DNA of 64,000 nucleotides from Auanema rhodensis (GCA_964057225.1 OZ059900.1:15066001-15130000), one strand, 5' to 3'. Positions 1 to 35,205 are shown, counted from the stretch's first letter. Notes: generated by a model from the sequence alone, not told the origin. Numbers and translations: made by a program.

Positions 1-94
1 TTTAAAACAACCTTTTTTCTAATAATTATCTTTTTAATTCGACTTTTGGAAGAAAACAAAAATAGCATAACATTCAATAACGATGAATCAGAAC

Positions 95-99
95 AAAAA
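95..99 (-). terminator. RNA polymerase III oligo-T terminator, repeated in each unit
   Basis: Minus strand reads G73-AATG-TTTTT, a T5 run 4 nt after the discriminator base. It is shortened to T4 in unit 2 (plus-strand acgaaaac near 533). Confidence 0.85.
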
Positions 100-103
100 C
101 ATT

Positions 104-175
104 CTCCCCGGCCGGGAATTGAACCCGGGTCTCGCATGTGACAGACGCGGATACTCACCACTATACTACCGAGGA
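104..175 (-). tRNA. tRNA-Asp-GTC: tRNA-Asp(GUC), representative consensus copy (first in window)
   Basis: Reverse complement is TCCTCGGTAGTATAGTGGTGAGTATCCGCGTCTGTCACATGCGAGACCCGGGTTCAATTCCCGGCCGGGGAG (72 nt). It folds into a full cloverleaf: acceptor TCCTCGG/CCGGGGA with discriminator G73, D stem GTAT/GTAT, anticodon stem CGCGT/ATGCG with loop CT-GTC-AC, 4-nt variable loop, T stem CCGGG/CCCGG with loop TTCAATT. No intron and no encoded CCA. Internal A box (TAGTATAGTGG) and B box (GGTTCAATTCC) are present. Confidence 0.98.
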
Positions 176-541
176 TTGAATTTGCACTTAGAAACTTTCA
201 TTCAGAGTGTGAGTTTGAATTATAGTAGAAAAATGAAACACTGTCTCTAACATATCTTGATTTATGGCCTACTTTACTCAAAGAGCTAATTGAAGTTTGG
301 TGTTAGAATGAACAATTGATTAACGCTGACGTTTCAATTTTTTTCATCGTAATTGAGATAGAACATTTAAATTAAATGGAAATGTTTAAAAATTTAGAAA
401 AAATCACAAGCTCAAATCACTTTTGAAAAAACAGAAAGTTTAAAACAACCTTTTTTCTAATAATTATCTTTTTTATCCGACTTTTGTAAAAAAACAAAAA
501 TAGCATAACATTCAATAACGATGAATCAGAACGAAAACATT

Positions 542-613
542 CTCCCCGGCCGGGAATTGAACCTGGGTCTCGCATGTGACAGACGCGGATACTCACCACT
601 ATACTACCGAGGA
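542..613 (-). tRNA. tRNA-Asp-GTC: tRNA-Asp(GUC), variant G51A (A51:C63 mismatch in T stem)
   Basis: Plus strand acctgggtct instead of acccgggtct, change at 564. Confidence 0.9.
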
Positions 614-979
614 TTGAATTTGCACTTAGAAACTTTCATTCAGAGTGTGAGTTCGAATTATAGTAGAAAAATGAAACACTGTCTCTAACATATCTTGATT
701 TATGGCCTACTTTACTCAAAGAGCTAATTGAAGTTTGGTGTTAAAATGAACAATTGATTAACGCTGACGTTTCAATTTTTTTCATCGTAATTGAGATAGA
801 ACATTTAAATTAAATGGAAATGTTTAAAAATTTAGAAAAAATCACAAGCTCAAATCACTTTTGAAAAAACAGAAAGTTTAAAACAACCTTCTTTCTAATA
901 ATTATCTTTTTAATTCGACTTTTGGAAGAAAACAAAAATAGCATAACATTCAATAACGATGAATCAGAACAAAAACATT

Positions 980-1051
980 CTCCCCGGCCGGGAATTGAAC
1001 CCGGGTCTCGCATGTGACAGACGCGGAAACTCACCACTATACTACCGAGGA
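980..1051 (-). tRNA. tRNA-Asp-GTC: tRNA-Asp(GUC), variant A24U (breaks the U11-A24 D-stem pair)
   Basis: Plus strand acgcggaaac instead of acgcggatac, change at 1028. Confidence 0.9.
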
Positions 1052-4000
1052 TTGAATTTGCACTTAGAAACTTTCATTCAGAGTGTGAGTTCGAATTATA
1101 GTAGAAAAATGAAACACTGTCTCTAACATATCTTGATTTATGGCCTACTTTACTCAAAGAGCTAATTGAAGTTTGGTGTTAAAATGAACAATTGATTAAC
1201 GCTGACGTTTCAATTTTTTTCATCGTAATTGAGATAGAACATTTAAATTAAATGGAAATGTTTAAAAATTTAGAAAAAATCACAAGCTCAAATCACTTTT
1301 GAAAAAACAGAAAGTTTAAAACAACCTTTTTTCTAATAATTATCTTTTTTATCCGACTTTTGTAAAAAAACAAAAATAGCATAACATTCAATAACGATGA
1401 ATCAGAACAAAAACATTCTCCCCGGCCGGGAATTGAACCCGGGTCTCGCATGTGACAGACGCGGATACTCACCACTATACTACCGAGGATTGAATTTGCA
1501 CTTAGAAACTTTCATTAAGAGTGTGAGTTTGAATTATAGTAGAAAAATGAAACACTGTCTCTAACATATCTTGATTTATGGCCTACTTTACTCAAAGAGC
1601 TAATTGAAGTTTGGTGTTAAAATGAACAATTGATTAACGCTGACGTTTCAATTTTTTTCATCGTAATTGAGATAGAACATTTAAATTAAATGGAAGTGTT
1701 TAAAAATTTAGAAAAAATCACAAGCTCAAATCACTTTTGAAAAAACAGAAAGTTTAAAACAACCTTTTTTCTAATAATTATCTTTTTAATTCGACTTTTG
1801 GAAGAAAACAAAAATAGCATAACATTCAATAACGATGAATCAGAACAAAAACATTCTCCCCGGCCGGGAATTGAACCCGGGTCTCGCATGTGACAGACGC
1901 GGATACTCACCACTATACTACCGAGGATTGAATTTGCACTTAGAAACTTTCATTCAGAGTGTGAGTTCGAATTATAGTAGAAAAATGAAACACTGTCTCT
2001 AACATATCTTGATTTATGGCCTACTTTACTCAAAGAGCTAATTGAAGTTTGGTGTTAAAATGAACAATTGATTAACGCTGACGTTTCAATTTTTTTCATC
2101 GTAATTGAGATAGAACATTTAAATTAAATGGAAATGTTTAAAAATTTAGAAAAAATCACAAGCTCAAATCACTTTTGAAAAAACAGAATGTTTAAAACAA
2201 CCTTTTTTCTAATAATTATCTTTTTTATCCGACTTTTGTAAAAAAACAAAAATAGCATAACATTCAATAACGATGAATCAGAACAAAAACATTCTCCCCG
2301 GCCGGGAATTGAACCCGGGTCTCGCATGTGACAGACGCGGATACTCACCACTATACTACCGAGGATTGAATTTGCACTTAGAAACTTTCATTAAGAGTGT
2401 GAGTTTGAATTATAGTAGAAAAATGAAACACTGTCTCTAACATATCTTGATTTATGGCCTACTTTACTCAAAGAGCTAATTGAAGTTTGGTGTTAAAATG
2501 AACAATTGATTAACGCTGACGTTTCAATTTTTTTCATCGTAATTGAGATAGAACATTTAAATTAAATGGAAGTGTTTGAAAATTTAGAAAAAATCACAAG
2601 CTCAAATCACTTTTGAAAAAACAGAAAGTTTAAAACAACCTTTTTTCTAATAATTATCTTTTTAATTCGACTTTTGGAAGAAAACAAAAATAGCATAACA
2701 TTCAATAACGATGAATCAGAACAAAAACATTCTCCCCGGCCGGGAATTGAACCCGGGTCTCGCATGTGACAGACGCGGATACTCACCACTATACTACCGA
2801 GGATTGAATTTGCACTTAGAAACTTTCATTAAGAGTGTGAGTTTGAATTATAGTAGAAAAATGAAACACTGTCTCTAACATATCTTGATTTATGGCCTAC
2901 TTTACTCAAAGAGCTAATTGAAGTTTGGTGTTAAAATGAACAATTGATTAACGCTGACGTTTCAATTTTTTTCATCGTAATTGAGATAGAACATTTAAAT
3001 TAAATGGAAGTGTTTAAAAATTTAGAAAAAATCACAAGCTCAAATCACTTTTGAAAAAACAGAAAGTTTAAAACAACCTTTTTTCTAATAATTATCTTTT
3101 TAATTCGACTTTTGGAAGAAAACAAAAATAGTATAACATTCAATAACGATGAATCAGAACAAAAACATTCTCCCCGGCCGGGAATTGAACCCGGGTCTCG
3201 CATGTGACAGACGCGGATACTCACCACTATACTACCGAGGATTGAATTTGCACTTAGAAACTTTCACTAAGAGTGTGAGTTTGAATTATAGTAGAAAAAT
3301 GAAACACTGTCTCTAACATATCTTGATTTATGGCCTACTTTACTCAAAGAGCTAATTGAAGTTTGGTGTTAGAATGAACAATTGATTAACGCTGACGTTT
3401 CAATTTTTTTCATCGTAATTGAGATAGAACATTTAAATTAAATGGAAATGTTTAACGACTTAGAAAAAAAACACAAGCTCAAATCACTTTTGAAAAAACA
3501 GAAAGTTTAAAACAACCTTTTTTCTAATAATTATCTTTTTTATCGGACTTTTGGAAGAAAACAAAAATAGCATAACATTCAATAACGATGAATCAGAACA
3601 AAAACATTCTCCCCGGCCGGGAATTGAACCCGGGTCTCGCATGTGACAGACGCGGATACTCACCACTATACTACCGAGGATTGAATTTGCACTTAGAAAC
3701 TTTCATTAAGAGTGTGAGTTTGAATTATAGTAGAAAAATGAAACACTGTCTCTAACATATCTTGATTTATGGCCTACTTTACTCAAAGAGCTAATGGAAG
3801 TTTGGTGTTAGAATGAACAATTGATTAACGCTGACGTTTCAATTTTTTTCATCGTACTTGAGATAGAACATTTAAATTAAATGGAAATGTTTAAAAATTT
3901 AGAAAAAATCACAAGCTCAAATCACTTTTGAAAAAACAGAAAGTTTAAAACAACTTTTTTTCTAATAATTATCTTTTTTATCCAACTTTTGTAAAAAAAC

Positions 4001-6099: not shown

Positions 6100-9000
6100 C
6101 ACAAGCTCAAATCACTTTTGAAAAAACAGAAAGTTTAAAACAACCTTTTTTCTAATAATTATCTTTTTTATCCGACTTTTGTAAAAAAACAAAAATAGCA
6201 TAACATTCAATAACGATGAATCAGAACAAAAACATTCTCCCCGGCCGGGAATTGAACCCGGGTCTCGCATGTGACAGACGCGGATACTCACCACTATACT
6301 ACCGAGGATTGAATTTGCACTTAGAAACTTTCATTAAGAGTGTGAGTTTGAATTATAGTAGAAAAATGAAACACTGTCTCTAACATATCTTGATTTATGG
6401 CCTACTTTACTCAAAGAGCTAATTGAAGTTTGGTGTTAAAATGAACAATTGATTAACGCTGACGTTTCAATTTTTTTCATCGTAATTGAGATAGAACATT
6501 TAAATTAAATGGAAGTGTTTAAAAATTTAGAAAAAATCACAAGCTCAAATCACTTTTGAAAAAACAGAAAGTTTAAAACAACCTTTTTTCTAATAATTAT
6601 CTTTTTTATCCGACTTTTGGAAGTAAACAAAAATAGCATAACATTCAATAACGATGAATCAGAACAAAAACATTCTCCCCGGCCGGGAATTGAACCCGGG
6701 TCTCGCATGTGACAGACGCGGATACTCACCACTATACTACCGAGGATTGAATTTGCACTTAGAAACTTTCATTAAGAGTGTGAGTTTGAATTATAGTAGA
6801 AAAATGAAACACTGTCTCTAACATATCTTGATTTATGGCCTACTTTACTCAAAGAGCTAATGGAAGTTTGGTGTTAGAATGAAGAATTGATTAACGCTGA
6901 CGTTTCAATTTTTTTCATCGTACTTGAGATAGAACATTTAAATTAAATGGAAATGTTTAAAAATTTAGAAAAAATCACAAGCTCAAATCACTTTTGAAAA
7001 AACAGAAAGTTTAAAACAACTTTTTTTCTAATAATTATCTTTTTTATCCGACTTTTGTAAAAAAACAAAAATAGCATAACATTCAATAACGATGAATCAG
7101 AACAAAAACATTCTCCCCGGCCGGGAATTGAACCCGGGTCTCGCATGTGACAGACGCGGATACTCACCACTATACTACCGAGGATTGAATTTGCACTTAG
7201 AAACTTTCATTAAGAGTGTGAGTTTGAATTATAGTAGAAAAATGAAACACTGTCTCTAACATATCTTGATTTATGGCCTACTTTACTCAAAGAGCTAATT
7301 GAAGTTTGGTGTTAGAATGAACAATTGATTAACGCTGACGTTTCAATTTTTTTCATCGTAATTGAGATAGAACATTCAAATTAAATAGAAATGTTTAAAA
7401 ATTTAGAAAAAATCACAAGCTCAAATCACTTTTGAAAAAACAGAAAGTTTAAAACAACCTTTTTTCTAATAATTATCTTTTTTATCCGACTTTTGTAAAA
7501 AAACAAAAATAGCATAACATTCAATAACGATGAATCAGAACAAAAACATTCTCCCCGGCCGGGAATTGAACCCGGGTCTCGCATGTGACAGACGCGGATA
7601 CTCACCACTATACTACCGAGGATTGAATTTGCACTTAGAAACTTTCACTAAGAGTGTGAGTTTGAATTATAGTAGAAAAATGAAACACTGTCTCTAACAT
7701 ATCTTGATTTATGGCCTACTTTACTCAAAGAGCTAATTGAAGTTTGGTGTTAAAATGAACAATTGATTAACGCTGACGTTTCAATTTTTTTCATCGTAAT
7801 TGAGATAGAACATTTAAATTAAATGGAAATGTTTAAAAATTTAGAAAAAATCACAAGCTCAAATCACTTTTGAAAAAACAGAAAGTTTAAAACAACCTTT
7901 TTTCTAATAATTATCTTTTTAATTCGACTTTTGGAAGAAAACAAAAATAGCATAACATTCAATAACGATGAATCAGAACAAAAACATTCTCCCCGGCCGG
8001 GAATTGAACCCGGGTCTCGCATGTGACAGACGCGGATACTCACCACTATACTACCGAGGATTGAATTTGCACTTAGAAACTTTCATTAAGAGTGTGAGTT
8101 TGAATTATAGTAGAAAAATGAAACACTGTCTCTAACATATCTTGATTTATGGCCTACTTTACTCAAAGAGCTAATTGAAGTTTGGTGTTAAAATGAACAA
8201 TTGATTAACGCTGACGTTTCAATTTTTTTCATCGTTATTGAGATAGAACATTTAAATTAAATGGAAGTGTTTAAAAATTTAGAAAAAATCACAAGCTCAA
8301 ATCACTTTTGAAAAAACAGAAAGTTTAAAACAACCTTTTTTCTAATAATTATCTTTTTAATTCGACTTTTGGAAGAAAACAAAAATAGCATAACATTCAA
8401 TAACGATGAATCAGAACAAAAACATTCTCCCCGGCCGGGAATTGAACCCGGGTCTCGCATGTGACAGACGCGGATACTCACCACTATACTACCGAGGATT
8501 GAATTTGCACTTAGAAACTTTCATTAAGAGTGTGAGTTCGAATTATAGTAGAAAAATGAAACACTGTCTCTAACATATCTTGATTTATGGCCTACTTTAC
8601 TCAAAGAGCTAATTGAAGTTTGGTGTTAAAATGAACAATTGATTAACGCTGACGTTTCAATTTTTTTCATCGTAATTGAGATAGAACATTTAAATTAAAT
8701 GGAAGTGTTTAAAAATTTAGAAAAAATCACAAGCTCAAATCACTTTTGAAAAAACAGAAAGTTTAAAACAACCTTTTTTCTAATAATTATCTTTTTTATC
8801 CGACTTTTGTAAAAAAACAAAAATAGCATAACATTCAATAACGATGAATCAGAACAAAAACATTCTCCCCGGCCGGGAATTGAACCCGGGTCTCGCATGT
8901 GACAGACGCGGATACTCACCACTATACTACCGAGGATTGAATTTGCACTTAGAAACTTTCATTAAGAGTGTGAGTTTGAATTATAGTAGAAAAATGAAAC

Positions 9001-12000
9001 ACTGTCTCTAACATATCTTGATTTATGGCCTACTTTACTCAAAGAGCTAATTGAAGTTTGGTGTTAAAATGAACAATTGATTAACGCTGACGTTTCAATT
9101 TTTTTCATCGTAATTGAGATAGAACATTTAAATTAAATGGAAGTGTTTAAAAATTTAGAAAAAATCACAAGCTCAAATCACTTTTGAAAAAACAGAAAGT
9201 TTAAAACAACCTTTTTTCTAATAATTATCTTTTTAATTCGACTTTTGGAAGAAAACAAAAATAGCATAACATTCAATAACGATGAATCAGAACAAAAACA
9301 TTCTCCCCGGCCGGGAATTGAACCCGGGTCTCGCATGTGACAGACGCGGATACTCACCACTATACTACCGAGGATTGAATTTGCACTTAGAAACTTTCAC
9401 TAAGAGTGTGAGTTTGAATTATAGTAGAAAAATGAAACACTGTCTCTAACATATCTTGATTTATGGCCTACTTTACTCAAAGAGCTAATTGAAGTTTGGT
9501 GTTAGAATGAACAATTGATTAACGCTGACGTTTCAATTTTTTTCATCGTAATTGAGATAGAACATTTAAATTAAATGGAAATGTTTAACGACTTAGAAAA
9601 AAAACACAAGCTCAAATCACTTTTGAAAAAACAGAAAGTTTAAAACAACTTTTTTTCTAATAATTATCTTTTTTATCCGACTTTTGTAAAAAAACAAAAA
9701 TAGCATAACATTCAATAACGATGAATCAGAACAAAAACATTCTCCCCGGCCGGGAATTGAACCCGGGTCTCGCATGTGACAGACGCGGATACTCACCACT
9801 ATACTACCGAGGATTGAATTTGCACTTAGAAACTTTCACTAAGAGTGTGAGTTTGAATTATAGTAGAAAAATGAAACACTGTCTCTAACATATCTTGATT
9901 TATGGCCTACTTTACTCAAAGAGCTAATTGAAGTTTGGTGTTAGAATGAACAATTGATTAACGCTGACGTTTCAATTTTTTTCATCGTAATTGAGATAGA
10001 ACATTTAAATTAAATGGAAATGTTTAACGACTTAGAAAAAAAACACAAGCTCAAATCACTTTTGAAAAAACAGAAAGTTTAAAACAACTTTTTTTCTAAT
10101 AATTATCTTTTTTATCCGACTTTTGTAAAAAAACAAAAATAGCATAACATTCAATAACGATGAATCAGAACAAAAACATTCTCCCCGGCCGGGAATTGAA
10201 CCCGGGTCTCGCATGTGACAGACGCGGATACTCACCACTATACTACCGAGGATTGAATTTGCACTTAGAAACTTTCATTAAGAGTGTGAGTTTGAATTAT
10301 AGTAGAAAAATGAAACACTGTCTCTAACATATCTTGATTTATGGCCTACTTTACTCAAAGAGCTAATTGAAGTTTGGTGTTAAAATGAACAATTGATTAA
10401 CGCTGACGTTTCAATTTTTTTCATCGTAATTGAGATAGAACATTTAAATTAAATGGAAGTGTTTAAAAATTTAGAAAAAATCACAAGCTCAAATCACTTT
10501 TGAAAAAACAGAAAGTTTAAAACAACCTTTTTTCTAATAATTATCTTTTTAATTCGACTTTTGGAAGAAAACAAAAATAGTATAACATTCAATAACGATG
10601 AATCAGAACAAAAACATTCTCCCCGGCCGGGAATTGAACCCGGGTCTCGCATGTGACAGACGCGGATACTCACCACTATACTACCGAGGATTGAATTTGC
10701 ACTTAGAAACTTTCACTAAGAGTGTGAGTTTGAATTATAGTAGAAAAATGAAACACTGTCTCTAACATATCTTGATTTATGGCCTACTTTACTCAAAGAG
10801 CTAATTGAAGTTTGGTGTTAGAATGAACAATTGATTAACGCTGACGTTTCAATTTTTTTCATCGTAATTGAGATAGAACATTTAAATTAAATGGAAATGT
10901 TTAACGACTTAGAAAAAAAACACAAGCTCAAATCACTTTTGAAAAAACAGAAAGTTTAAAACAACCTTTTTTCTAATAATTATCTTTTTTATCCGACTTT
11001 TGGAAGTAAACAAAAATAGCATAACATTCAATAACGATGAATCAGAACAAAAACATTCTCCCCGGCCGGGAATTGAACCCGGGTCTCGCATGTGACAGAC
11101 GCGGATACTCACCACTATACTACCGAGGATTGAATTTGCACTTAGAAACTTTCATTAAGAGTGTGAGTTTGAATTATAGTAGAAAAATGAAACACTGTCT
11201 CTAACATATCTTGATTTATGGCCTACTTTACTCAAAGAGCTAATGGAAGTTTGGTGTTAGAATGAACAATTGATTAACGCTGACGTTTCAATTTTTTTCA
11301 TCGTACTTGAGATAGAACATTTAAATTAAATGGAAATGTTTAAAAATTTAGAAAAAATCACAAGCTCAAATCACTTTTGAAAAAACAGAAAGTTTAAAAC
11401 AACTTTTTTTCTAATAATTATCTTTTTTATCCAACTTTTGTAAAAAAACAAAAATAGCATAACATTCAATAACGATGAATCAGAACAAAAACATTCTCCC
11501 CGGCCGGGAATTGAACCCGGGTCTCGCATGTGACAGACGCGGATACTCACCACTATACTACCGAGGATTGAATTTGCACTTAGAAACTTTCACTAAGAGT
11601 GTGAGTTTGAATTATAGTAGAAAAATGAAACACTGTCTCTAACATATCTTGATTTATGGCCTACTTTACTCAAAGAGCTAATTGAAGTTTGGTGTTAGAA
11701 TGAACAATTGATTAACGCTGACGTTTCAATTTTTTTCATCGTAATTGAGATAGAACATTTAAATTAAATGGAAATGTTTAACGACTTAGAAAAAAAACAC
11801 AAGCTCAAATCACTTTTGAAAAAACAGAAAGTTTAAAACAACCTTTTTTCTAATAATTATCTTTTTTATCCGACTTTTGGAAGAAAACAAAAATAGCATA
11901 ACATTCAATAACGATGAATCAGAACAAAAACATTCTCCCCGGCCGGGAATTGAACCCGGGTCTCGCATGTGACAGACGCGGATACTCACCACTATACTAC

Positions 12001-15000
12001 CGAGGATTGAATTTGCACTTAGAAACTTTCATTAAGAGTGTGAGTTTGAATTATAGTAGAAAAATGAAACACTGTCTCTAACATATCTTGATTTATGGCC
12101 TACTTTACTCAAAGAGCTAATGGAAGTTTGGTGTTAGAATGAACAATTGATTAACGCTGACGTTTCAATTTTTTTCATCGTACTTGAGATAGAACATTTA
12201 AATTAAATGGAAATGTTTAAAAATTTAGAAAAAATCACAAGCTCAAATCACTTTTGAAAAAACAGAAAGTTTAAAACAACTTTTTTTCTAATAATTATCT
12301 TTTTTATCCAACTTTTGTAAAAAAACAAAAATAGCATAACATTCAATAACGATGAATCAGAACAAAAACATTCTCCCCGGCCGGGAATTGAACCCGGGTC
12401 TCGCATGTGACAGACGCGGATACTCACCACTATACTACCGAGGATTGAATTTGCACTTAGAAACTTTCACTAAGAGTGTGAGTTTGAATTATAGTAGAAA
12501 AATGAAACACTGTCTCTAACATATCTTGATTTATGGCCTACTTTACTCAAAGAGCTAATTGAAGTTTGGTGTTAGAATGAACAATTGATTAACGCTGACG
12601 TTTCAATTTTTTTCATCGTAATTGAGATAGAACATTTAAATTAAATGGAAATGTTTAACGACTTAGAAAAAAAACACAAGCTCAAATCACTTTTGAAAAA
12701 ACAGAAAGTTTAAAACAACCTTTTTTCTAATAATTATCTTTTTTATCCGACTTTTGGAAGAAAACAAAAATAGCATAACATTCAATAACGATGAATCAGA
12801 ACAAAAACATTCTCCCCGGCCGGGAATTGAACCCGGGTCTCGCATGTGACAGACGCGGATACTCACCACTATACTACCGAGGATTGAATTTGCACTTAGA
12901 AACTTTCATTAAGAGTGTGAGTTTGAATTATAGTAGAAAAATGAAACACTGTCTCTAACATATCTTGATTTATGGCCTACTTTACTCAAAGAGCTAATGG
13001 AAGTTTGGTGTTAGAATGAACAATTGATTAACGCTGACGTTTCAATTTTTTTCATCGTACTTGAGATAGAACATTTAAATTAAATGGAAATGTTTAAAAA
13101 TTTAGAAAAAATCACAAGCTCAAATCACTTTTGAAAAAACAGAAAGTTTAAAACAACTTTTTTTCTAATAATTATCTTTTTTATCCAACTTTTGTAAAAA
13201 AACAAAAATAGCATAACATTCAATAACGATGAATCAGAACAAAAACATTCTCCCCGGCCGGGAATTGAACCCGGGTCTCGCATGTGACAGACGCGGATAC
13301 TCACCACTATACTACCGAGGATTGAATTTGCACTTAGAAACTTTCACTAAGAGTGTGAGTTTGAATTATAGTAGAAAAATGAAACACTGTCTCTAACATA
13401 TCTTGATTTATGGCCTACTTTACTCAAAGAGCTAATTGAAGTTTGGTGTTAGAATGAACAATTGATTAACGCTGACGTTTCAATTTTTTTCATCGTAATT
13501 GAGATAGAACATTTAAATTAAATGGAAATGTTTAACGACTTAGAAAAAAAACACAAGCTCAAATCACTTTTGAAAAAACAGAAAGTTTAAAACAACCTTT
13601 TTTCTAATAATTATCTTTTTTATCCGACTTTTGTAAAAAAACAAAAATAGCATAACATTCAATAACGATGAATCAGAACAAAAACATTCTCCCCGGCCGG
13701 GAATTGAACCCGGGTCTCGCATGTGACAGACGCGGATACTCACCACTATACTACCGAGGATTGAATTTGCACTTAGAAACTTTCATTAAGAGTGTGAGTT
13801 TGAATTATAGTAGAAAAATGAAACACTGTCTCTAACATATCTTGATTTATGGCCTACTTTACTCAAAGAGCTAATTGAAGTTTGGTGTTAAAATGAACAA
13901 TTGATTAACGCTGACGTTTCAATTTTTTTCATCGTAATTGAGATAGAACATTTAAATTAAATGGAAGTGTTTAAAAATTTAGAAAAAATCACAAGCTCAA
14001 ATCACTTTTGAAAAAACAGAAAGTTTAAAACAACCTTTTTTCTAATAATTATCTTTTTTATCCGACTTTTGGAAGTAAACAAAAATAGCATAACATTCAA
14101 TAACGATGAATCAGAACAAAAACATTCTCCCCGGCCGGGAATTGAACCCGGGTCTCGCATGTGACAGACGCGGATACTCACCACTATACTACCGAGGATT
14201 GAATTTGCACTTAGAAACTTTCATTAAGAGTGTGAGTTTGAATTATAGTAGAAAAATGAAACACTGTCTCTAACATATCTTGATTTATGGCCTACTTTAC
14301 TCAAAGAGCTAATGGAAGTTTGGTGTTAGAATGAAGAATTGATTAACGCTGACGTTTCAATTTTTTTCATCGTACTTGAGATAGAACATTTAAATTAAAT
14401 GGAAATGTTTAAAAATTTAGAAAAAATCACAAGCTCAAATCACTTTTGAAAAAACAGAAAGTTTAAAACAACTTTTTTTCTAATAATTATCTTTTTTATC
14501 CGACTTTTGTAAAAAAACAAAAATAGCATAACATTCAATAACGATGAATCAGAACAAAAACATTCTCCCCGGCCGGGAATTGAACCCGGGTCTCGCATGT
14601 GACAGACGCGGATACTCACCACTATACTACCGAGGATTGAATTTGCACTTAGAAACTTTCATTAAGAGTGTGAGTTTGAATTATAGTAGAAAAATGAAAC
14701 ACTGTCTCTAACATATCTTGATTTATGGCCTACTTTACTCAAAGAGCTAATTGAAGTTTGGTGTTAGAATGAACAATTGATTAACGCTGACGTTTCAATT
14801 TTTTTCATCGTAATTGAGATAGAACATTCAAATTAAATAGAAATGTTTAAAAATTTAGAAAAAATCACAAGCTCAAATCACTTTTGAAAAAACAGAAAGT
14901 TTAAAACAACCTTTTTTCTAATAATTATCTTTTTTATCCGACTTTTGTAAAAAAACAAAAATAGCATAACATTCAATAACGATGAATCAGAACAAAAACA

Positions 15001-18000: not shown

Positions 18001-20798
18001 TTAATTCGACTTTTGGAAGAAAACAAAAATAGTATAACATTCAATAACGATGAATCAGAACAAAAACATTCTCCCCGGCCGGGAATTGAACCCGGGTCTC
18101 GCATGTGACAGACGCGGATACTCACCACTATACTACCGAGGATTGAATTTGCACTTAGAAACTTTCACTAAGAGTGTGAGTTTGAATTATAGTAGAAAAA
18201 TGAAACACTGTCTCTAACATATCTTGATTTATGGCCTACTTTACTCAAAGAGCTAATTGAAGTTTGGTGTTAGAATGAACAATTGATTAACGCTGACGTT
18301 TCAATTTTTTTCATCGTAATTGAGATAGAACATTTAAATTAAATGGAAATGTTTAACGACTTAGAAAAAAAACACAAGCTCAAATCACTTTTGAAAAAAC
18401 AGAAAGTTTAAAACAACCTTTTTTCTAATAATTATCTTTTTTATCCGACTTTTGGAAGTAAACAAAAATAGCATAACATTCAATAACGATGAATCAGAAC
18501 AAAAACATTCTCCCCGGCCGGGAATTGAACCCGGGTCTCGCATGTGACAGACGCGGATACTCACCACTTTACTACCGAGGATTGAATTTGCACTTAGAAA
18601 CTTTCATTAAGAGTGTGAGTTTGAATTATAGTAGAAAAATGAAACACTGTCTCTAACATATCTTGATTTATGGCCTACTTTACTCAAAGAGCTAATGGAA
18701 GTTTGGTGTTAGAATGAACAATTGATTAACGCTGACGTTTCAATTTTTTTCATCGTACTTGAGATAGAACATTTAAATTAAATGGAAATGTTTAAAAATT
18801 TAGAAAAAATCACAAGCTCAAATCACTTTTGAAAAAACAGAAAGTTTAAAACAACTTTTTTTCTAATAATTATCTTTTTTATCCAACTTTTGTAAAAAAA
18901 CAAAAATAGCATAACATTCAATAACGATGAATCAGAACAAAAACATTCTCCCCGGCCGGGAATTGAACCCGGGTCTCGCATGTGACAGACGCGGATACTC
19001 ACCACTATACTACCGAGGATTGAATTTGCACTTAGAAACTTTCACTAAGAGTGTGAGTTTGAATTATAGTAGAAAAATGAAACACTGTCTCTAACATATC
19101 TTGATTTATGGCCTACTTTACTCAAAGAGCTAATTGAAGTTTGGTGTTAGAATGAACAATTGATTAACGCTGACGTTTCAATTTTTTTCATCGTAATTGA
19201 GATAGAACATTTAAATTAAATGGAAATGTTTAACGACTTAGAAAAAAAACACAAGCTCAAATCACTTTTGAAAAAACAGAAAGTTTAAAACAACCTTTTT
19301 TCTAATAATTATCTTTTTTATCCGACTTTTGGAAGAAAACAAAAATAGCATAACATTCAATAACGATGAATCAGAACAAAAACATTCTCCCCGGCCGGGA
19401 ATTGAACCCGGGTCTCGCATGTGACAGACGCGGATACTCACCACTATACTACCGAGGATTGAATTTGCACTTAGAAACTTTCATTAAGAGTGTGAGTTTG
19501 AATTATAGTAGAAAAATGAAACACTGTCTCTAACATATCTTGATTTATGGCCTACTTTACTCAAAGAGCTAATGGAAGTTTGGTGTTAGAATGAACAATT
19601 GATTAACGCTGACGTTTCAATTTTTTTCATCGTACTTGAGATAGAACATTTAAATTAAATGGAAATGTTTAAAAATTTAGAAAAAATCACAAGCTCAAAT
19701 CACTTTTGAAAAAACAGAAAGTTTAAAACAACTTTTTTTCTAATAATTATCTTTTTTATCCAACTTTTGTAAAAAAACAAAAATAGCATAACATTCAATA
19801 ACGATGAATCAGAACAAAAACATTCTCCCCGGCCGGGAATTGAACCCGGGTCTCGCATGTGACAGACGCGGATACTCACCACTATACTACCGAGGATTGA
19901 ATTTGCACTTAGAAACTTTCACTAAGAGTGTGAGTTTGAATTATAGTAGAAAAATGAAACACTGTCTCTAACATATCTTGATTTATGGCCTACTTTACTC
20001 AAAGAGCTAATTGAAGTTTGGTGTTAGAATGAACAATTGATTAACGCTGACGTTTCAATTTTTTTCATCGTAATTGAGATAGAACATTTAAATTAAATGG
20101 AAATGTTTAACGACTTAGAAAAAAAACACAAGCTCAAATCACTTTTGAAAAAACAGAAAGTTTAAAACAACCTTTTTTCTAATAATTATCTTTTTTATCC
20201 GACTTTTGGAAGAAAACAAAAATAGCATAACATTCAATAACGATGAATCAGAACAAAAACATTCTCCCCGGCCGGGAATTGAACCCGGGTCTCGCATGTG
20301 ACAGACGCGGATACTCACCACTATACTACCGAGGATTGAATTTGCACTTAGAAACTTTCATTAAGAGTGTGAGTTTGAATTATAGTAGAAAAATGAAACA
20401 CTGTCTCTAACATATCTTGATTTATGGCCTACTTTACTCAAAGAGCTAATGGAAGTTTGGTGTTAGAATGAACAATTGATTAACGCTGACGTTTCAATTT
20501 TTTTCATCGTACTTGAGATAGAACATTTAAATTAAATGGAAATGTTTAAAAATTTAGAAAAAATCACAAGCTCAAATCACTTTTGAAAAAACAGAAAGTT
20601 TAAAACAACTTTTTTTCTAATAATTATCTTTTTTATCCAACTTTTGTAAAAAAACAAAAATAGCATAACATTCAATAACGATGAATCAGAACAAAAACAT
20701 TCTCCCCGGCCGGGAATTGAACCCGGGTCTCGCATGTGACAGACGCGGATACTCACCACTATACTACCGAGGATTGAATTTGCACTTAGAAACTTTCA
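6100..20798. repeat. Higher-order tandem duplication of 17 tRNA units (7452-bp period)
   Basis: Rare variants recur at exactly +7452: gaagaatt at 6884/14336, catcgttatt at 8236/15688, and ORF-variant pairs 6550/14002, 10494/17946, 10933/18385, 13125/20577. Confidence 0.92.
18510..18581 (-). tRNA. tRNA-Asp-GTC: tRNA-Asp(GUC), variant U13A (A box / D stem)
   Basis: Plus strand tcaccacttt instead of tcaccactat, change at 18569. Confidence 0.9.
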
Positions 20799-23700
20799 TT
20801 AAGAGTGTGAGTTTGAATTATAGTAGAAAAATGAAACACTGTCTCTAACATATCTTGATTTATGGCCTACTTTACTCAAAGAGCTAATTGAAGTTTGGTG
20901 TTAAAATGAACAATTGATTAACGCTGACGTTTCAATTTTTTTCATCGTAATTGAGATAGAACATTTAAATTAAATGGAAGTGTTTAAAAATTTAGAAAAA
21001 ATCACAAGCTCAAATCACTTTTGAAAAAACAGAAAGTTTAAAACAACCTTTTTTCTAATAATTATCTTTTTAATTCGACTTTTGGAAGAAAACAAAAATA
21101 GCATAACATTCAATAACGATGAATCAGAACAAAAACATTCTCCCCGGCCGGGAATTGAACCCGGGTCTCGCATGTGACAGACGCGGATACTCACCACTAT
21201 ACTACCGAGGATTGAATTTGCACTTAGAAACTTTCACTAAGAGTGTGAGTTTGAATTATAGTAGAAAAATGAAACACTGTCTCTAACATATCTTGATTTA
21301 TGGCCTACTTTACTCAAAGAGCTAATTGAAGTTTGGTGTTAGAATGAACAATTGATTAACGCTGACGTTTCAATTTTTTTCATCGTAATTGAGATAGAAC
21401 ATTTAAATTAAATGGAAATGTTTAACGACTTAGAAAAAAAACACAAGCTCAAATCACTTTTGAAAAAACAGAAAGTTTAAAACAACCTTTTTTCTAATAA
21501 TTATCTTTTTTATCCGACTTTTGGAAGAAAACAAAAATAGCATAACATTCAATAACGATGAATCAGAACAAAAACATTCTCCCCGGCCGGGAATTGAACC
21601 CGGGTCTCGCATGTGACAGACGCGGATACTCACCACTATACTACCGAGGATTGAATTTGCACTTAGAAACTTTCATTAAGAGTGTGAGTTTGAATTATAG
21701 TAGAAAAATGAAACACTGTCTCTAACATAGCTTGATTTATGGCCTACTTTACTCAAAGAGCTAATGGAAGTTTGGTGTTAGAATGAACAATTGATTAACG
21801 CTGACGTTTCAATTTTTTTCATCGTACTTGAGATAGAACATTTAAATTAAATGGAAATGTTTAAAAATTTAGAAAAAATCACAAGCTCAAATCACTTTTG
21901 AAAAAACAGAAAGTTTAAAACAACTTTTTTTCTAATAATTATCTTTTTTATCCGACTTTTGTAAAAAAACAAAAATAGCATAACATTCAATAACGATGAA
22001 TCAGAACAAAAACATTCTCCCCGGCCGGGAATTGAACCCGGGTCTCGCATGTGACAGACGCGGATACTCACCACTATACTACCGAGGATTGAATTTGCAC
22101 TTAGAAACTTTCTTTAAGAGTGTGAGTTTGAATTATAGTAGAAAAATGAAACACTGTCTCTAACATATCTTGATTTATGGCCTACTTTACTCAAAGAGCT
22201 AATTGAAGTTTGGTGTTAAAATGAACAATTGATTAACGCTGACGTTTCAATTTTTTTCATCGTACTTGAGATAGAACATTTAAATTAAATGGAAGTGTTT
22301 AAAAATTTAGAAAAAATCACAAGCTCAAATCACTTTTGAAAAAACAGAAAGTTTAAAACAACTTTTTTTCTAATAATTATCTTTTTTATCCAACTTTTGT
22401 AAAAAAACAAAAATAGCATAACACTCAATAACGATGAATCAGAACAAAAACATTCTCCCCGGCCGGGAATTGAACCCGGGTCTCGCATGTGACAGACGCG
22501 GATACTCACCACTATACTACCGAGGATTGAATTTGCACTTAGAAACTTTCATTAAGAGTGTGAGTTTGAATTATAGTAGAAAAATGAAACACTGTCTCTA
22601 ACATATCTTGATTTATGGCCTACTTTACTCAAAGAGCTAATTGAAGTTTGGTGTTAGAATGAACAATTGATTAACGCTGACGTTTCAATTTTTTTCATCG
22701 TAATTGAGATAGAACATTTAAATTAAATGGAAATGTTTAAAAATTTAGAAAAAATCACAAGCTCAAATCACTTTTGAAAAAACAGAAAGTTTAAAACAAC
22801 CTTTTTTCTAATAATTATCTTTTTTATCCGACTTTTGTAAAAAAACAAAAATAGCATAACATTCAATAACGATGAATCAGAACAAAAACATTCTCCCCGG
22901 CCGGGAATTGAACCCGGGTCTCGCATGTGACAGACGCGGATACTCACCACTATACTACCGAGGATTGAATTTGCACTTAGAAACTTTCACTAAGAGTGTG
23001 AGTTTGAATTATAGTAGAAAAATGAAACACTGTCTCTAACATATCTTGATTTATGGCCTACTTTACTCAAAGAGCTAATTGAAGTTTGGTGTTAGAATGA
23101 ACAATTGATTAACGCTGACGTTTCAATTTTTTTCATCGTAATTGAGATAGAACATTTAAATTAAATGGAAATGTTTAACGACTTAGAAAAAAAACACAAG
23201 CTCAAATCACTTTTGAAAAAACAGAAAGTTTAAAACAACCTTTTTTCTAATAATTATCTTTTTTATCCGACTTTTGGAAGAAAAAAAAATAGCATAACAT
23301 TCAATAACGATGAATCAGAACAAAAACATTCTCCCCGGCCGGGAATTGAACCCGGGTCTCGCATGTGACAGACGCGGATACTCACCACTATACTACCGAG
23401 GATTGAATTTGCACTTAGAAACTTTCATTAAGAGTGTGAGTTTGAATTATAGTAGAAAAATGAAACACTGTCTCTAACATATCTTGATTTATGGCCTACT
23501 TTACTCAAAGAGCTAATGGAAGTTTGGTGTTAGAATGAACAATTGATTAACGCTGACGTTTCAATTTTTTTCATCGTACTTGAGATAGAACATTTAAATT
23601 AAATGGAAATGTTTAAAAATTTAGAAAAAATCACAAGCTCAAATCACTTTTGAAAAAACAGAAAGTTTAAAACAACTTTTTTTCTAATAATTATCTTTTT

Positions 23701-24206
23701 TATCCGACTTTTGTAAAAAAACAAAAATAGCATAACATTCAATAACGATGAATCAGAACAAAAACATTCTCCCCGGCCGGGAATTGAACCCGGGTCTCGC
23801 ATGTGACAGACGCGGATACTCACCACTATACTACCGAGGATTGAATTTGCACTTAGAAACTTTCTTTAAGAGTGTGAGTTTGAATTATAGTAGAAAAATG
23901 AAACACTGTCTCTAACATATCTTGATTTATGGCCTACTTTACTCAAAGAGCTAATTGAAGTTTGGTGTTAAAATGAACAATTGATTAACGCTGACGTTTC
24001 AATTTTTTTCATCGTAATTGAGATAGAACATTTAAATTAAATGGAAATGTTTAAAAATTTAGAAAAAATCACAAGCTCAAATCACTTTTGAAAAAACAGA
24101 AAGTTTAAAACAACCTTTTTTCTAATAATTATCTTTTTAATTCGACTTTTGGAAGAAAACAAAAATAGCATAACATTCAATAACGATGAATCAGAACAAA
24201 AACATT

Positions 24207-24278
24207 CTCCCCGGCCGGGAATTGAACCCGGGTCTCGCATGTGACAGACGCGGATACTCACCACTATACTACCGAGGA
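24207..24278 (-). tRNA. tRNA-Asp-GTC: tRNA-Asp(GUC), consensus copy whose 5' flank is interrupted by the 300-bp insertion
   Basis: Identical to the consensus; the insertion TSD begins 59 bp upstream of its 5' end. Confidence 0.97.
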
Positions 24279-24336
24279 TTGAATTTGCACTTAGAAACTT
24301 TCATTAAGAGTGTGAGTTTGAATTATAGTAGAAAAA

Positions 24337-24646
24337 TGAAATGTCGCTTTGGCGAAGGTATTCGGTTGTCGGTATTCCGCTGAGAATTAATAGAACAGAT
24401 AGTCAGTGGTAGAATGCTTTATTAAAGAGAAAGTTAACAATATCAACAAAATATAGATCGTCTATACTCCGTTGAAGTAAGTTGAGGTATATCGTATTTT
24501 CCGATCCCAAAGATGAAGATATGGGAAGGCGGGCCGAAAAGTACAATCTGAAATAGACAAAGTAAAGGAAAACGATAAAAACAAAACTGAAATGGAACAA
24601 AACATAGAAAAAAGAATAAAAAATAATCGCTAACCGCGACATGAAA
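24337..24646. repeat. 5-bp target-site duplication TGAAA flanking the insertion
   Basis: Empty site: gaaaaa-TGAAA-cactgt. Filled site: gaaaaa-TGAAA-[tgtcgc...gcgaca]-TGAAA-cactgt. Confidence 0.95.
24342..24641 (-). mobile_element. 300-bp insertion, probable solo LTR of an LTR retrotransposon (BEL/Pao or Ty3/gypsy type); strand is tentative
   Basis: Unit spacing jumps from 438 to 743 bp (+305). The element starts TGTCGC and ends GCGACA (TG..CA termini, 6-bp inverted repeat). TGAAA flanks it at 24337-24341 and 24642-24646 and occurs once at the empty site. AATAAA is present on minus at 24418-24423 and on plus at 24615-24620, so orientation is not certain. No PBS, PPT or internal coding sequence adjoins it. 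Confidence 0.85.
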
Positions 24647-30600: not shown

Positions 30601-33600
30601 AAAATAGCATAACATTCAATAACGATGAATCAGAACAAAAACATTCTCCCCGGCCGGGAATTGAACCCGGGTCTCGCATGTGACAGACGCGGATACTCAC
30701 CACTATACTACCGAGGATTGAATTTGCACTTAGAAACTTTCATTAAGAGTGTGAGTTTGAATTATAGTAGAAAAATGAAACACTGTCTCTAACATATCTT
30801 GATTTATGGCCTACTTTACTCAAAGAGCTAATGGAAGTTTGGTGTTAGAATGAACAATTGATTAACGCTGACGTTTCAATTTTTTTCATCGTACTTGAGA
30901 TAGAACATTTAAATTAAATGAAAATGTTTAAAAATTTAGAAAAAATCACAAGCTCAAATCACTTTTGAAAAAACAGAAAGTTTAAAACAACTTTTTTTCT
31001 AATAATTATCTTTTTTATCCGACTTTTGTAAAAAAACAAAAATAGCATAACATTCAATAACGATGAATCAGAACAAAAACATTCTCCCCGGCCGGGAATT
31101 GAACCCGGGTCTCGCATGTGACAGACGCGGATACTCACCACTATACTACCGAGGATTGAATTTGCACTTAGAAACTTTCTTTAAGAGTGTGAGTTTGAAT
31201 TATAGTAGAAAAATGAAACACTGTCTCTAACATATCTTGATTTATGGCCTACTTTACTCAAAGAGCTAATTGAAGTTTGGTGTTAAAATGAACAATTGAT
31301 TAACGCTGACGTTTCAATTTTTTTCATCGTAATTGAGATAGAACATTTAAATTAAATGGAAATGTTTAAAAATTTAGAAAAAATCACAAGCTCAAATCAC
31401 TTTTGAAAAAACAGAAAGTTGAAAACAACCTTTTTTCTAATAATTATCTTTTTAATTCGACTTTTGGAAGAAAACAAAAATAGCATAACATTCAATAACG
31501 ATGAATCAGAACAAAAACATTCTCCCCGGCCGGGAATTGAACCCGGGTCTCGCATGTGACAGACGCGGATACTCACCACTATACTACCGAGGATTGAATT
31601 TGCACTTAGAAACTTTCATTAAGAGTGTGAGTTTGAATTATAGTAGAAAAATGAAACACTGTCTCTAACATATCTTGATTTATGGCCTACTTTACTCAAA
31701 GAGCTAATGGAAGTTTGGTGTTAGAATGAACAATTGATTAACGCTGACGTTTCAATTTTTTTCATCGTACTTGAGATAGAACATTTAAATTAAATGGAAA
31801 TGTTTAAAAATTTAGAAAAAATCACAAGCTCAAATCACTTTTGAAAAAACAGAAAGTTTAAAACAACTTTTTTTCTAATAATTATCTTTTTTATCCGACT
31901 TTTGTAAAAAAACAAAAATAGCATAACATTCAATAACGATGAATCAGAACAAAAACATTCTCCCCGGCCGGGAATTGAACCCGGGTCTCGCATGTGACAG
32001 ACGCGGATACTCACCACTATACTACCGAGGATTGAATTTGCACTTAGAAACTTTCATTAAGAGTGTGAGTTTGAATTATAGTAGAAAAATGAAACACTGT
32101 GTCTAACATATCTTGATTTATGGCCTACTTTACTCAAAGAGCTAATTGAAGTTTGGTGTTAGAATGAACAATTGATTAACGCTGACGTTTCAATTTTTTT
32201 CATCGTAATTGAGATAGAACATTTAAATTAAATGGAAATGTTTAAAAATTTAGAAAAAATCACAAGCTCAAATCACTTTTGAAAAAACAGAAAGTTTAAA
32301 ACAACCTTTTTTCTAATACTTATCTTTTTTATCCGACTTTTGTAAAAAAACAAAAATAGCATAACATTCAATAACGATGAATCAGAACAAAAACATTCTC
32401 CCCGGCCGGGAATTGAACCCGGGTCTCGCATGTGACAGACGCGGATACTCACCACTATACTACCGAGGATTGAATTTGCACTTAGAAACTTTCATTAAGA
32501 GTGTGAGTTTGAATTATAGTAGAAAAATGAAACACTGTCTCTAACATATCTTGATTTATGGCCTACTTTACTCAAAGAGCTAATTGAAGTTTGGTGTTAA
32601 AATGAACAATTGATTAACGCTGACGTTTCAATTTTTTTCATCGTAATTGAGATAGAACATTTAAATTAAATGGAAGTGTTTAAAAATTTAGAAAAAATCA
32701 CAAGCTCAAATCACTTTTGAAAAAACAGAAAGTTTAAAACAACCTTTTTTCTAATAATTATCTTTTTAATTCGACTTTTGGAAGAAAACAAAAATAGCAT
32801 AACATTCAATAACGATGAATCAGAACAAAAACATTCTCCCCGGCCGGGAATTGAACCCGGGTCTCGCATGTGACAGACGCGGATACTCACCACTATACTA
32901 CCGAGGATTGAATTTGCACTTAGAAACTTTCACTAAGAGTGTGAGTTTGAATTATAGTAGAAAAATGAAACACTGTCTCTAACATATCTTGATTTATGGC
33001 CTACTTTACTCAAAGAGCTAATTGAAGTTTGGTGTTAGAATGAACAATTGATTAACGCTGACGTTTCAATTTTTTTCATCGTAATTGAGATAGAACATTT
33101 AAATTAAATGGAAATGTTTAAAAATTTAGAAAAAATCACAAGCTCAAATCACTTTTGAAAAAACAGAAAGTTTAAAACAACCTTTTTTCTAATACTTATC
33201 TTTTTTATCCGACTTTTGTAAAAAAACAAAAATAGCATAACATTCAATAACGATGAATCAGAACAAAAACATTCTCCCCGGCCGGGAATTGAACCCGGGT
33301 CTCGCATGTGACAGACGCGGATACTCACCACTATACTACCGAGGATTGAATTTGCACTTAGAAACTTTCATTAAGAGTGTGAGTTTGAATTATAGTAGAA
33401 AAATGAAACACTGTCTCTAACATATCTTGATTTATGGCCTACTTTACTCAAAGAGCTAATTGAAGTTTGGTGTTAAAATGAACAATTGATTAACGCTGAC
33501 GTTTCAATTTTTTTCATCGTAATTGAGATAGAACATTTAAATTAAATGGAAGTGTTTAAAAATTTAGAAAAAATCACAAGCTCAAATCACTTTTGAAAAA

Positions 33601-34588
33601 ACAGAAAGTTTAAAACAACCTTTTTTCTAATAATTATCTTTTTAATTCGACTTTTGGAAGAAAACAAAAATAGCATAACATTCAATAACGATGAATCAGA
33701 ACAAAAACATTCTCCCCGGCCGGGAATTGAACCCGGGTCTCGCATGTGACAGACGCGGATACTCACCACTATACTACCGAGGATTGAATTTGCACTTAGA
33801 AACTTTCACTAAGAGTGTGAGTTTGAATTATAGTAGAAAAATGAAACACTGTCTCTAACATATCTTGATTTATGGCCTACTTTACTCAAAGAGCTAATTG
33901 AAGTTTGGTGTTAGAATGAACAATTGATTAACGCTGACGTTTCAATTTTTTTCATCGTAATTGAGATAGAACATTTAAATTAAATGGAAATGTTTAACGA
34001 CTTAGAAAAAAAACACAAGCTCAAATCACTTTTGAAAAAACAGAAAGTTTAAAACAACCTTTTTTCTAATAATTATCTTTTTTATCCGACTTTTGGAAGA
34101 AAACAAAAATAGCATAACATTCAATAACGATGAATCAGAACAAAAACATTCTCCCCGGCCGGGAATTGAACCCGGGTCTCGCATGTGACAGACGCGGATA
34201 CTCACCACTATACTACCGAGGATTGAATTTGCACTTAGAAACTTTCATTAAGAGTGTGAGTTTGAATTATAGTAGAAAAATGAAACACTGTCTCTAACAT
34301 ATCTTGATTTATGGCCTACTTTACTCAAAGAGCTAATTGAAGTTTGGTGTTAGAATGAACAATTGATTAACGCTGACGTTTCAATTTTTTTCATCGTAAT
34401 TGAGATAGAACATTCAAATTAAATAGAAATGTTTAAAAATTTAGAAAAAATCACAAGCTCAAATCACTTTTGAAAAAACAGAAAGTTTAAAACAACCTTT
34501 TTTCTAATAATTATCTTTTTTATCCGACTTTTGTAAAAAAACAAAAATAGCATAACATTCAATAACGATGAATCAGAACAAAAACATT

Positions 34589-34660
34589 CTCCCCGGCCGG
34601 GTATTGAACCCGGGTCTCGCATGTGACAGACGCGGATACTCACCACTATACTACCGAGGA
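34589..34660 (-). tRNA. tRNA-Asp-GTC: tRNA-Asp(GUC), variant U60A (T loop / B box)
   Basis: Plus strand gtattgaacc instead of gaattgaacc, change at 34602. Confidence 0.9.
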
Positions 34661-35026
34661 TTGAATTTGCACTTAGAAACTTTCATTAAGAGTGTGAGTT
34701 TGAATTATAGTAGAAAAATGAAACACTGTCTCTAACATATCTTGATTTATGGCCTACTTTACTCAAAGAGCTAATTGAAGTTTGGTGTTAGAATGAACAA
34801 TTGATTAACGCTGACGTTTCAATTTTTTTCATCGTAATTGAGATAGAACATTCAAATTAAATAGAAATGTTTAAAAATTTAGAAAAAATCACAAGCTCAA
34901 ATCACTTTTGAAAAAACAGAAAGTTTAAAACAACCTTTTTTCTAATAATTATCTTTTTTATCCGACTTTTGTAAAAAAACAAAAATAGCATAACATTCAA
35001 TAACGATGAATCAGAACAAAAACATT

Positions 35027-35098
35027 CTCCCCGGCCGGGAATTGAACCCGGGTCTCGCATGTGACAGACGCGGATACTCACCACTATACTACCGAGGA
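35027..35098 (-). tRNA. tRNA-Asp-GTC: tRNA-Asp(GUC), last copy before the satellite; consensus sequence
   Basis: Identical to the consensus and retains 103 bp of normal 5' flank before the junction. Confidence 0.97.
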
Positions 35099-35201
35099 TT
35101 GAATTTGCACTTAGAAACTTTCATTAAGAGTGTGAGTTTGAATTATAGTAGAAAAATGAAACACTGTCTCTAACATATCTTGATTTATGGCCTACTTTAC
35201 T

Positions 35202-35205
35202 ACTA
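35202..35205. other. 4-nt filler (ACTA) at the tRNA-array/satellite junction
   Basis: The tRNA unit matches up to ...cctactttact (35201; normally followed by caaag). The satellite matches from aaatactgtg (35206; normally preceded by ggg). Confidence 0.85.

Follow-up and report, generated by a model that had tools for sequence, protein, structure and literature searches.

In Hydractinia, transfer RNA (tRNA) genes of a single isotype form same-strand arrays with roughly even spacing, whose near-identical copies number from tens up to 254; arrays of at least 100 copies occur for seven isotypes, and the largest array consists of 254 tRNA-Pro genes separated by spacers of 192 to 272 nt (PMC11067881). 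In that genome, an array was defined as a run of at least 10 contiguous predictions that share isotype and strand and in which at least 75% of the spacers have lengths within 100 nt of each other; smaller single-isotype arrays are present in Nematostella (PMC11067881). In zebrafish, maternally deposited tRNAs are encoded by repetitive clusters, with tRNA-Asp-GTC as the most abundant tRNA, and maternal 5S clusters have also been described. In 5S ribosomal DNA (rDNA), concerted evolution keeps the gene constant, and the spacer turns over quickly between lineages. Here, we analyze a tandem array of at least 80 tRNA-Asp(GTC) genes in a 64,000-nucleotide stretch of DNA from Auanema rhodensis (GCA_964057225.1, OZ059900.1:15066001-15130000; hereafter, the window). 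An earlier, sequence-only reading of this DNA had noted the array and listed Entamoeba and a few other clusters as the best-known long tandem tRNA arrays, a background that is incomplete in that it overlooked the single-isotype arrays of Hydractinia and Nematostella (PMC11067881).

ARAGORN predicts 80 tRNA-Asp(GTC) genes in the window, all on the minus strand, the first at 104-175 and the last at 35027-35098. At gathering thresholds, RF00005 is the only Rfam family recognized over the whole window, and its 80 intervals match those of ARAGORN; as for the cloverleaf of a eukaryotic nuclear tRNA gene, all 80 pass RF00005 and all 80 are called Asp/GTC. RF00005 scores are 55.4 bits in 76 of the genes and 48.6 to 52.5 bits in the other four (the gathering score is 29). 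Start-to-start distances between genes are 438 bp in 62 cases and 439 bp in 16, and the single spacing of 743 bp arises because a 299-bp element sits in that spacer. Tandem Repeats Finder (TRF) assigns a 438-bp period, with 98% matches, to positions 1-24341 and 24641-35201, and each 438-bp unit is made up of one 72-nt gene and a 366-bp AT-rich spacer. As delimited by ARAGORN, TRF, and Rfam, the array occupies 1..35201 (minus strand) as 80 units of 438 or 439 bp; because it runs off the left edge of the window, which cuts it, 80 copies is a lower bound.

By the definition used for Hydractinia, this is a tandem array, with 80 predictions and 78 of 79 spacings of 438 or 439 bp. It is also a satellite in the sense of a long, head-to-tail array of a single unit with high identity between copies, extending over at least 35.2 kb. 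The count of at least 80 co-oriented tRNA-Asp genes, one per 438 bp, given by the sequence-only reading is therefore reproduced by two programs, since ARAGORN and Rfam each return 80. Absent from that earlier description were the minus-strand orientation of the genes and the 299-bp insertion at 24342-24640.

The genes themselves are nearly invariant: 76 of the 80 are identical, and the remaining four carry one substitution apiece. The majority sequence is represented by the copy at 1856..1927 (minus strand; Rfam 55.4 bits, full model 1-71). Its A box (TAGTATAGTGG) corresponds to gene positions 8-18 (1910-1920 in the window), and its B box (GGTTCAATTCC) corresponds to gene positions 51-61 (1867-1877); both agree with the consensus. 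In all 80 genes the leader ends in ...AAATTCAA. The trailer, AATGTTTTTG, contains a run of five Ts (T5) in 79 of 80 units and a run of four in the other; in the representative gene, this RNA polymerase III (Pol III) terminator lies at 1847..1851 on the minus strand, 4 nt past the 3′ end. The A box, B box, and T5 terminator that had been claimed for the genes are thus all present, save for the T4 run of one unit, and in combination they show every unit to be a complete predicted type-2 Pol III transcription unit for tRNA-Asp(GUC).

The four variant genes, all likewise on the minus strand, are those at 542..613 (G50A, window position 564), where an A-C mismatch is created in the T stem (Rfam 49.9 bits); at 980..1051 (A24T, window position 1028), where a D-stem pair is broken (48.6 bits); at 18510..18581 (T13A, window position 18569), in the D stem (52.5 bits); and at 34589..34660 (T59A, window position 34602), in the T loop (51.9 bits). 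A stem pair is broken by three of these four single substitutions. The earlier description of the genes as intact, then, holds strictly for 76 of 80 and loosely for all 80. A tRNA-derived short interspersed nuclear element was considered as an identity for the repeats and rejected because the terminator directly follows a full-length gene (T5 within 4 nt) and the copies are strictly tandem, with no individual target duplications.

To the right, the array abuts a second tandem repeat, a satellite of 342-bp units that is unrelated to the tRNA unit, occupies 35206..64000 in about 84 copies (TRF, 98% matches; no strand assigned), and exits the right edge of the window. The two repeats can be compared monomer by monomer. 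Cut in tRNA orientation and aligned, the 78 comparable monomers of the tRNA-Asp array resolve into 37 distinct sequences; identity between pairs averages 98.3% (minimum, 96.1%) and is independent of distance along the array. Among 80 monomers of the 342-bp satellite, 51 sequences are distinct, identity between pairs averages 98.6%, and there are local higher-order runs of two to five monomers (e.g., 2, 3, and 5). The tRNA-Asp array and its unrelated neighbor are thereby shown to be at the same level of concerted evolution, in keeping with the earlier claim that the array is homogenized like a satellite and lies beside a true one.

Variants of the tRNA-Asp monomers fall into recurring haplotypes, and a dimer pattern of 439 plus 438 bp (877 bp) recurs many times. 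At a larger scale, the haplotype string of monomers m15-m30 equals that of m32-m47, and at a lag of 7,452 bp there are only two mismatches over about 7.3 kb (6100 to ~13430 versus its partner). Haplotype strings and the lag comparison together delimit a 17-monomer higher-order block of 7,452 bp, the first copy of which lies at 6100..13551; the lag comparison places a second, nearly complete copy at 13552..20880. One of the two differences between the copies is the stem-breaking T13A substitution at 18569, inside a tRNA gene; since T13A separates the two block copies, it postdates the 17-unit duplication. Near-identical 17-unit blocks of this kind correspond to either very recent unequal exchange or assembly duplication. 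Block duplications of the type generated by unequal exchange are found in the tRNA-Asp array, and the monomer patterns show an array that, by this evidence, expands and homogenizes through unequal exchange of blocks of 1 to 17 units. Because both arrays display the block-wise unequal exchange typical of satellites, to say that the tRNA-Asp array evolves like satellite DNA is fair.

The reading that we favor, and that we consider rather probable, is that the array represents a real nuclear tRNA gene family that has been amplified in tandem and that arises and persists as 5S rDNA does, with the gene and its near flanks under selection. Its copies are probably able to be transcribed. The internal A and B boxes would be bound by TFIIIC, with TFIIIB and Pol III starting just upstream of ...TTCAA; the pre-tRNA would terminate in the T5 run, be trimmed and CCA-tailed, and enter the tRNA pool decoding GAC and GAU. 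Selection would hold the gene and some 25 to 35 nt on each side constant, and the spacers would drift. The array would reside within a satellite-rich, probably heterochromatic domain and its output would probably be regulated or stage-restricted, as the adjacency of at least 80 genes for one isoacceptor to a plain satellite suggests. Such a stage could plausibly be one of high germline or oocyte demand, as in zebrafish, whose maternal tRNA clusters would, by analogy, constitute a real precedent for an oocyte stockpile.

Evidence for selection within the window comes from the distribution of variants along the unit. Variants shared by two or more units occur in 28 alignment columns, none of which lies inside the 72-nt gene or its near flanks; the longest arc of the circular unit that is free of shared variants measures 134 nt and consists of the gene plus 24 nt upstream and 37 nt downstream. 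With random placement of 28 sites, p is 0.001 for such an arc and 0.006 for a variant-free gene. Singleton columns, by contrast, show no depletion in the gene (4 of 72, versus 11 of 367 elsewhere; Fisher p = 0.28), and since singletons are as frequent inside the gene as outside, mutations strike the gene, yet none of them spread. Taken from the window alone, the freedom of the gene from shared variants is suggestive and would fit purifying selection on the arrayed copies.

Several considerations weigh against a selected, working gene family. When linked adjacent variants are merged, 16 events remain, and p is then ~0.05 for both the arc and the gene. Given a divergence of only 1.7%, the intact genes could reflect young amplification. 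That three of the four singleton changes in the gene break stem pairs shows that the array tolerates damaged copies. Finally, a plain satellite as neighbor points to a heterochromatic setting, in which Pol III genes can be silent.

The most serious alternative is that the array is a neutral or selfish satellite with a captured tRNA gene, recently amplified by unequal exchange or by a rolling-circle process, in which the genes are largely silent in heterochromatin and appear intact because the array is young. The borderline outcome of the cluster-aware test and the tolerance of stem-breaking singletons both favor it, as do a homogeneity and block dynamics indistinguishable from those of the non-genic 342-bp neighbor and the impression that at least 80 copies of one isoacceptor exceed translational need. 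Less easily accommodated is the lack of spread variants in the gene and near flanks, even though singletons arise there at a rate no lower than that in the spacer. It is also hard to reconcile with a second array family, described below, that keeps the gene while its spacers differ by 12% between neighbors and are unalignable to those of the window. We give this explanation appreciable weight but do not regard it as probable.

The comparison with other genomes was drawn from metagenome contigs (ENA metagenomes) that were reached by a word-based protein search through spurious short open reading frames (ORFs) crossing the tRNA. In one contig of 1,723 bp (L001), a single gene, identical over its 72 nt, follows a different leader and precedes the trailer AATCTTTTTG. 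The flank of this gene contains intron-like segments of ~45 nt that start with GTAAG or GTGAG and end with TTCCAG or TTAAAG, and the contig also has two TTGGCGGGAAA-like motifs. Short rhabditid introns follow the same GTAAG/GTGAG...TTCCAG/TTAAAG pattern, and the intron-like segments weakly suggest a nematode-like genome as the source.

Two further contigs, L009 (588 bp; ERZ28614435) and L010 (531 bp; ERZ964827, from the wastewater project PRJEB27054), carry the tRNA-Asp gene in a tandem array with a period of 313 bp. Bacterivorous nematodes are common in wastewater, and the origin of L010 thus gives, like the intron-like segments of L001, weak support to the description of the anticodon stem as nematode-type in the sequence-only reading. 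In the 313-bp array, the gene is identical to that of the window except for one C-to-T change, which gives a G-U pair, and adjacent spacers are 88% identical. Homology between this spacer and that of the window was sought and rejected, the local alignment score being within the range of shuffled controls. The ~70 nt immediately upstream of the gene in L009 and L010 are GC-rich and better conserved than the remaining spacer, and this stretch may be an upstream control element; the upstream flank of the 313-bp array was also encountered in two further proteins from other samples. The remaining contigs recovered contain different tRNA-Asp sequences, which are 86 to 90% identical to the window gene. 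None of the contigs resembled human DNA.

Exact matching was less productive. Among 241 million JGI metagenome records, none contained an exact match to a 51-nt or a 24-nt piece of the gene, which counts against a widespread soil-nematode sequence, and exact scans of GTDB genomes and IMG/VR with tRNA gene pieces were also empty.

Because the identical 72 nt recur in unrelated contexts, the window gene is the canonical tRNA-Asp gene of its lineage. These alignments show the identical gene to be conserved both at a single-copy locus and in two families of arrays, between which the spacers share no detectable similarity. A constant gene with diverged spacers in the second array is the pattern expected under selection on arrayed copies, and the constancy of the gene across a single-copy locus and two array families is the strongest argument for such selection. 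Since 438-bp and 313-bp arrays of the same gene come from at least two organisms, a clade-wide locus may exist: a dedicated, 5S-rDNA-like tDNA-Asp locus (tDNA, tRNA gene) conserved across an invertebrate and possibly nematode clade, perhaps as a germline or oocyte stockpile or as germline-restricted DNA, rather than a one-off satellite. We advance this broader proposal tentatively and consider it doubtful at present.

Other explanations concern what the array is for, where it persists, and whether it is real. It could have a structural or chromatin role, with dense TFIIIC sites serving as a barrier, as a condensin or cohesin loading zone, or as a nucleolar or pericentric tether, regardless of how much tRNA it yields. 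Barrier and insulator activity of tDNAs is documented, a human tDNA repeat at 1q23.3 has been proposed as a boundary element, and the window array stands directly at the edge of another satellite. The argument is one of analogy alone, however, as a B box every 438 bp simply follows from amplification of a tRNA gene and nothing in the sequence separates a structural function from gene dosage; we think such a role unlikely.

A second possibility, which could be combined with either the favored gene family or a silent satellite, is that the tDNA array and the 342-bp satellite are germline-restricted DNA removed from the soma by programmed DNA elimination, in which case the tRNAs would serve the germline alone. 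DNA eliminated in ascaridids, Mesorhabditis, and early-branching Caenorhabditis is enriched in satellites, and the window consists entirely (100%) of tandem repeat. Against this, the published eliminated satellites have units of 150 to 160 bp, with tRNA genes unmentioned there, and the satellites of most animals are mostly not eliminated. The germline restriction suggested in the sequence-only reading finds no support in the window: neither telomere-type repeats nor sites of telomere addition are present, with 0 occurrences in the 64 kb of TTAGGC, of its complement, or of any of four further telomere-type motifs, although the ends of the block may lie outside the window. Elimination from the soma therefore strikes us as quite improbable. 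Least credible of all is an assembly artifact in which the assembler inflated an array that is really much shorter. Two 7.45-kb blocks with only two differences are a structure that assemblers can wrongly duplicate, but exact repetition of one block would then be expected, in place of 37 distinct monomers among 78 in non-periodic order, a unique 299-bp insertion, and a clean satellite junction.

The tDNA array passes abruptly into the 342-bp satellite: its final unit ends 103 bp upstream of its gene and is followed by ~4 filler bases (35202..35205; no strand). Derivation of the satellite from the 438-bp unit was considered and rejected (best blastn E value, 0.07 over 26 nt). Within the otherwise AT-rich 342-bp unit there is a near-palindromic, GC-rich core, GGGGCGTGCCCTC. 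No ORF of at least 50 amino acids was found in the 2.3 kb of this satellite that was sampled (35200-37500), and no Rfam family was recognized at permissive thresholds in the 1.4 kb scanned (35206-36600). The lengths of the two units (438 and 342) are each divisible by 3, yet no frame is open beyond 60 codons. Three spurious ORFs taken from the 438-bp unit and the insertion corresponded exactly to no recorded sequence, and when the spacer, the 342-bp satellite, and the insertion were scanned permissively with Rfam for a further RNA gene, only tRNAs were recognized. In both repeat units the observed/expected CpG ratio is 0.8 to 1.0, which speaks only against a genome with heavy CpG methylation, such as that of a vertebrate.

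The 299-bp insertion (24342..24640; no strand assigned) interrupts a single spacer on the upstream side of the tRNA gene at 24207-24278, 63 bp from its 5′ end. A 6-bp target duplication, ATGAAA (24336-24341 and 24641-24646), borders the insertion, which has imperfect terminal inverted repeats of ~13 bp (TGTCGC...GCGACA) and no Rfam match. These features indicate that it is probably a small, non-autonomous DNA mobile element. Targeting could explain why it lies upstream of a Pol III gene, although there is only this one case.

Literature searches on tRNA-Asp arrays or satellites and on nematode tRNA arrays returned nothing specific, and searches with pieces of the tRNA sequence returned no paper; the papers examined on nematode genomes and on DNA elimination in Caenorhabditis do not describe tRNA arrays either. 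What is new here is an Asp-only array of at least 80 copies with a 438-bp unit that directly abuts another satellite, along with the finding that this gene is also arrayed in a second organism, where its spacers are unrelated. If the host is a true nematode, or another animal with normally dispersed tRNA genes, one isoacceptor has been expanded to roughly the size of an ordinary whole gene family. Such an array raises questions about the control of Pol III gene dosage, stage-specific tRNA pools, and chromatin at tDNA. Transcripts of the array can be told apart by their specific leader and trailer, which allows a direct test of whether the genes are used or silent. With an identical gene, fast-changing spacers, and two array families, it also offers a clean natural system for separating selection from drift under concerted evolution; if the genes are silent, it is merely another satellite that carries a tRNA gene along.

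This kind of array has already been published, as single-isotype tRNA arrays of 100 to 254 genes are known in Hydractinia. The window resembles those arrays in having one gene per unit, all on the same strand, near-identical spacers of a few hundred base pairs, and a genome rich in other tandem repeats. It differs in that all 20 isotypes and several small nuclear RNAs are arrayed in Hydractinia, whereas one isoacceptor is visible in the window; furthermore, Asp is minor in Hydractinia, with 84 to 100 predictions in all, a minority of which are in arrays, and for this reason the window is unlikely to derive from Hydractinia. The 5S rDNA, including the oocyte-type 5S genes of Xenopus and zebrafish, resembles the window array in several ways: the Pol III gene is short, has its promoter inside, and ends at a run of Ts; the unit spans a few hundred base pairs; and a constant gene is combined with a spacer that changes quickly between lineages, as between the window and contigs L009 and L010. 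Since 5S genes have a type-1 promoter and use TFIIIA, in contrast to the type-2 tRNA gene of the window, this likeness is a functional analogy and not family membership.

Among other tRNA systems, zebrafish chromosome 4 has highly repetitive tRNA gene regions, the source of the maternally deposited tRNAs, in a repeat-rich, heterochromatic arm, but its tDNA pairs are mostly heterogeneous (mixed isotypes) rather than copies of a single 438-bp unit. In Entamoeba, nearly all tRNA genes are in satellite-like tandem arrays that make up more than 10% of the genome; unlike the host of the window array, Entamoeba is a protist, and its arrays are of mixed genes and are its sole source of tRNA. The human 1q23.3 tDNA variable number tandem repeat likewise consists of tandem tRNA units that include tRNA-Asp, varies in copy number by unequal exchange, and is transcribed, but its unit is 7.3 kb in length with five different tRNA genes and is present in 9 to 43 copies. 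Similarly, the Ser-Tyr-Tyr array on Arabidopsis chromosome 1 is made up of tandem tRNA units that vary in copy number through unequal exchange and are transcribed; it consists, however, of 27 triplet units, as opposed to the short single-gene satellite that we describe here.

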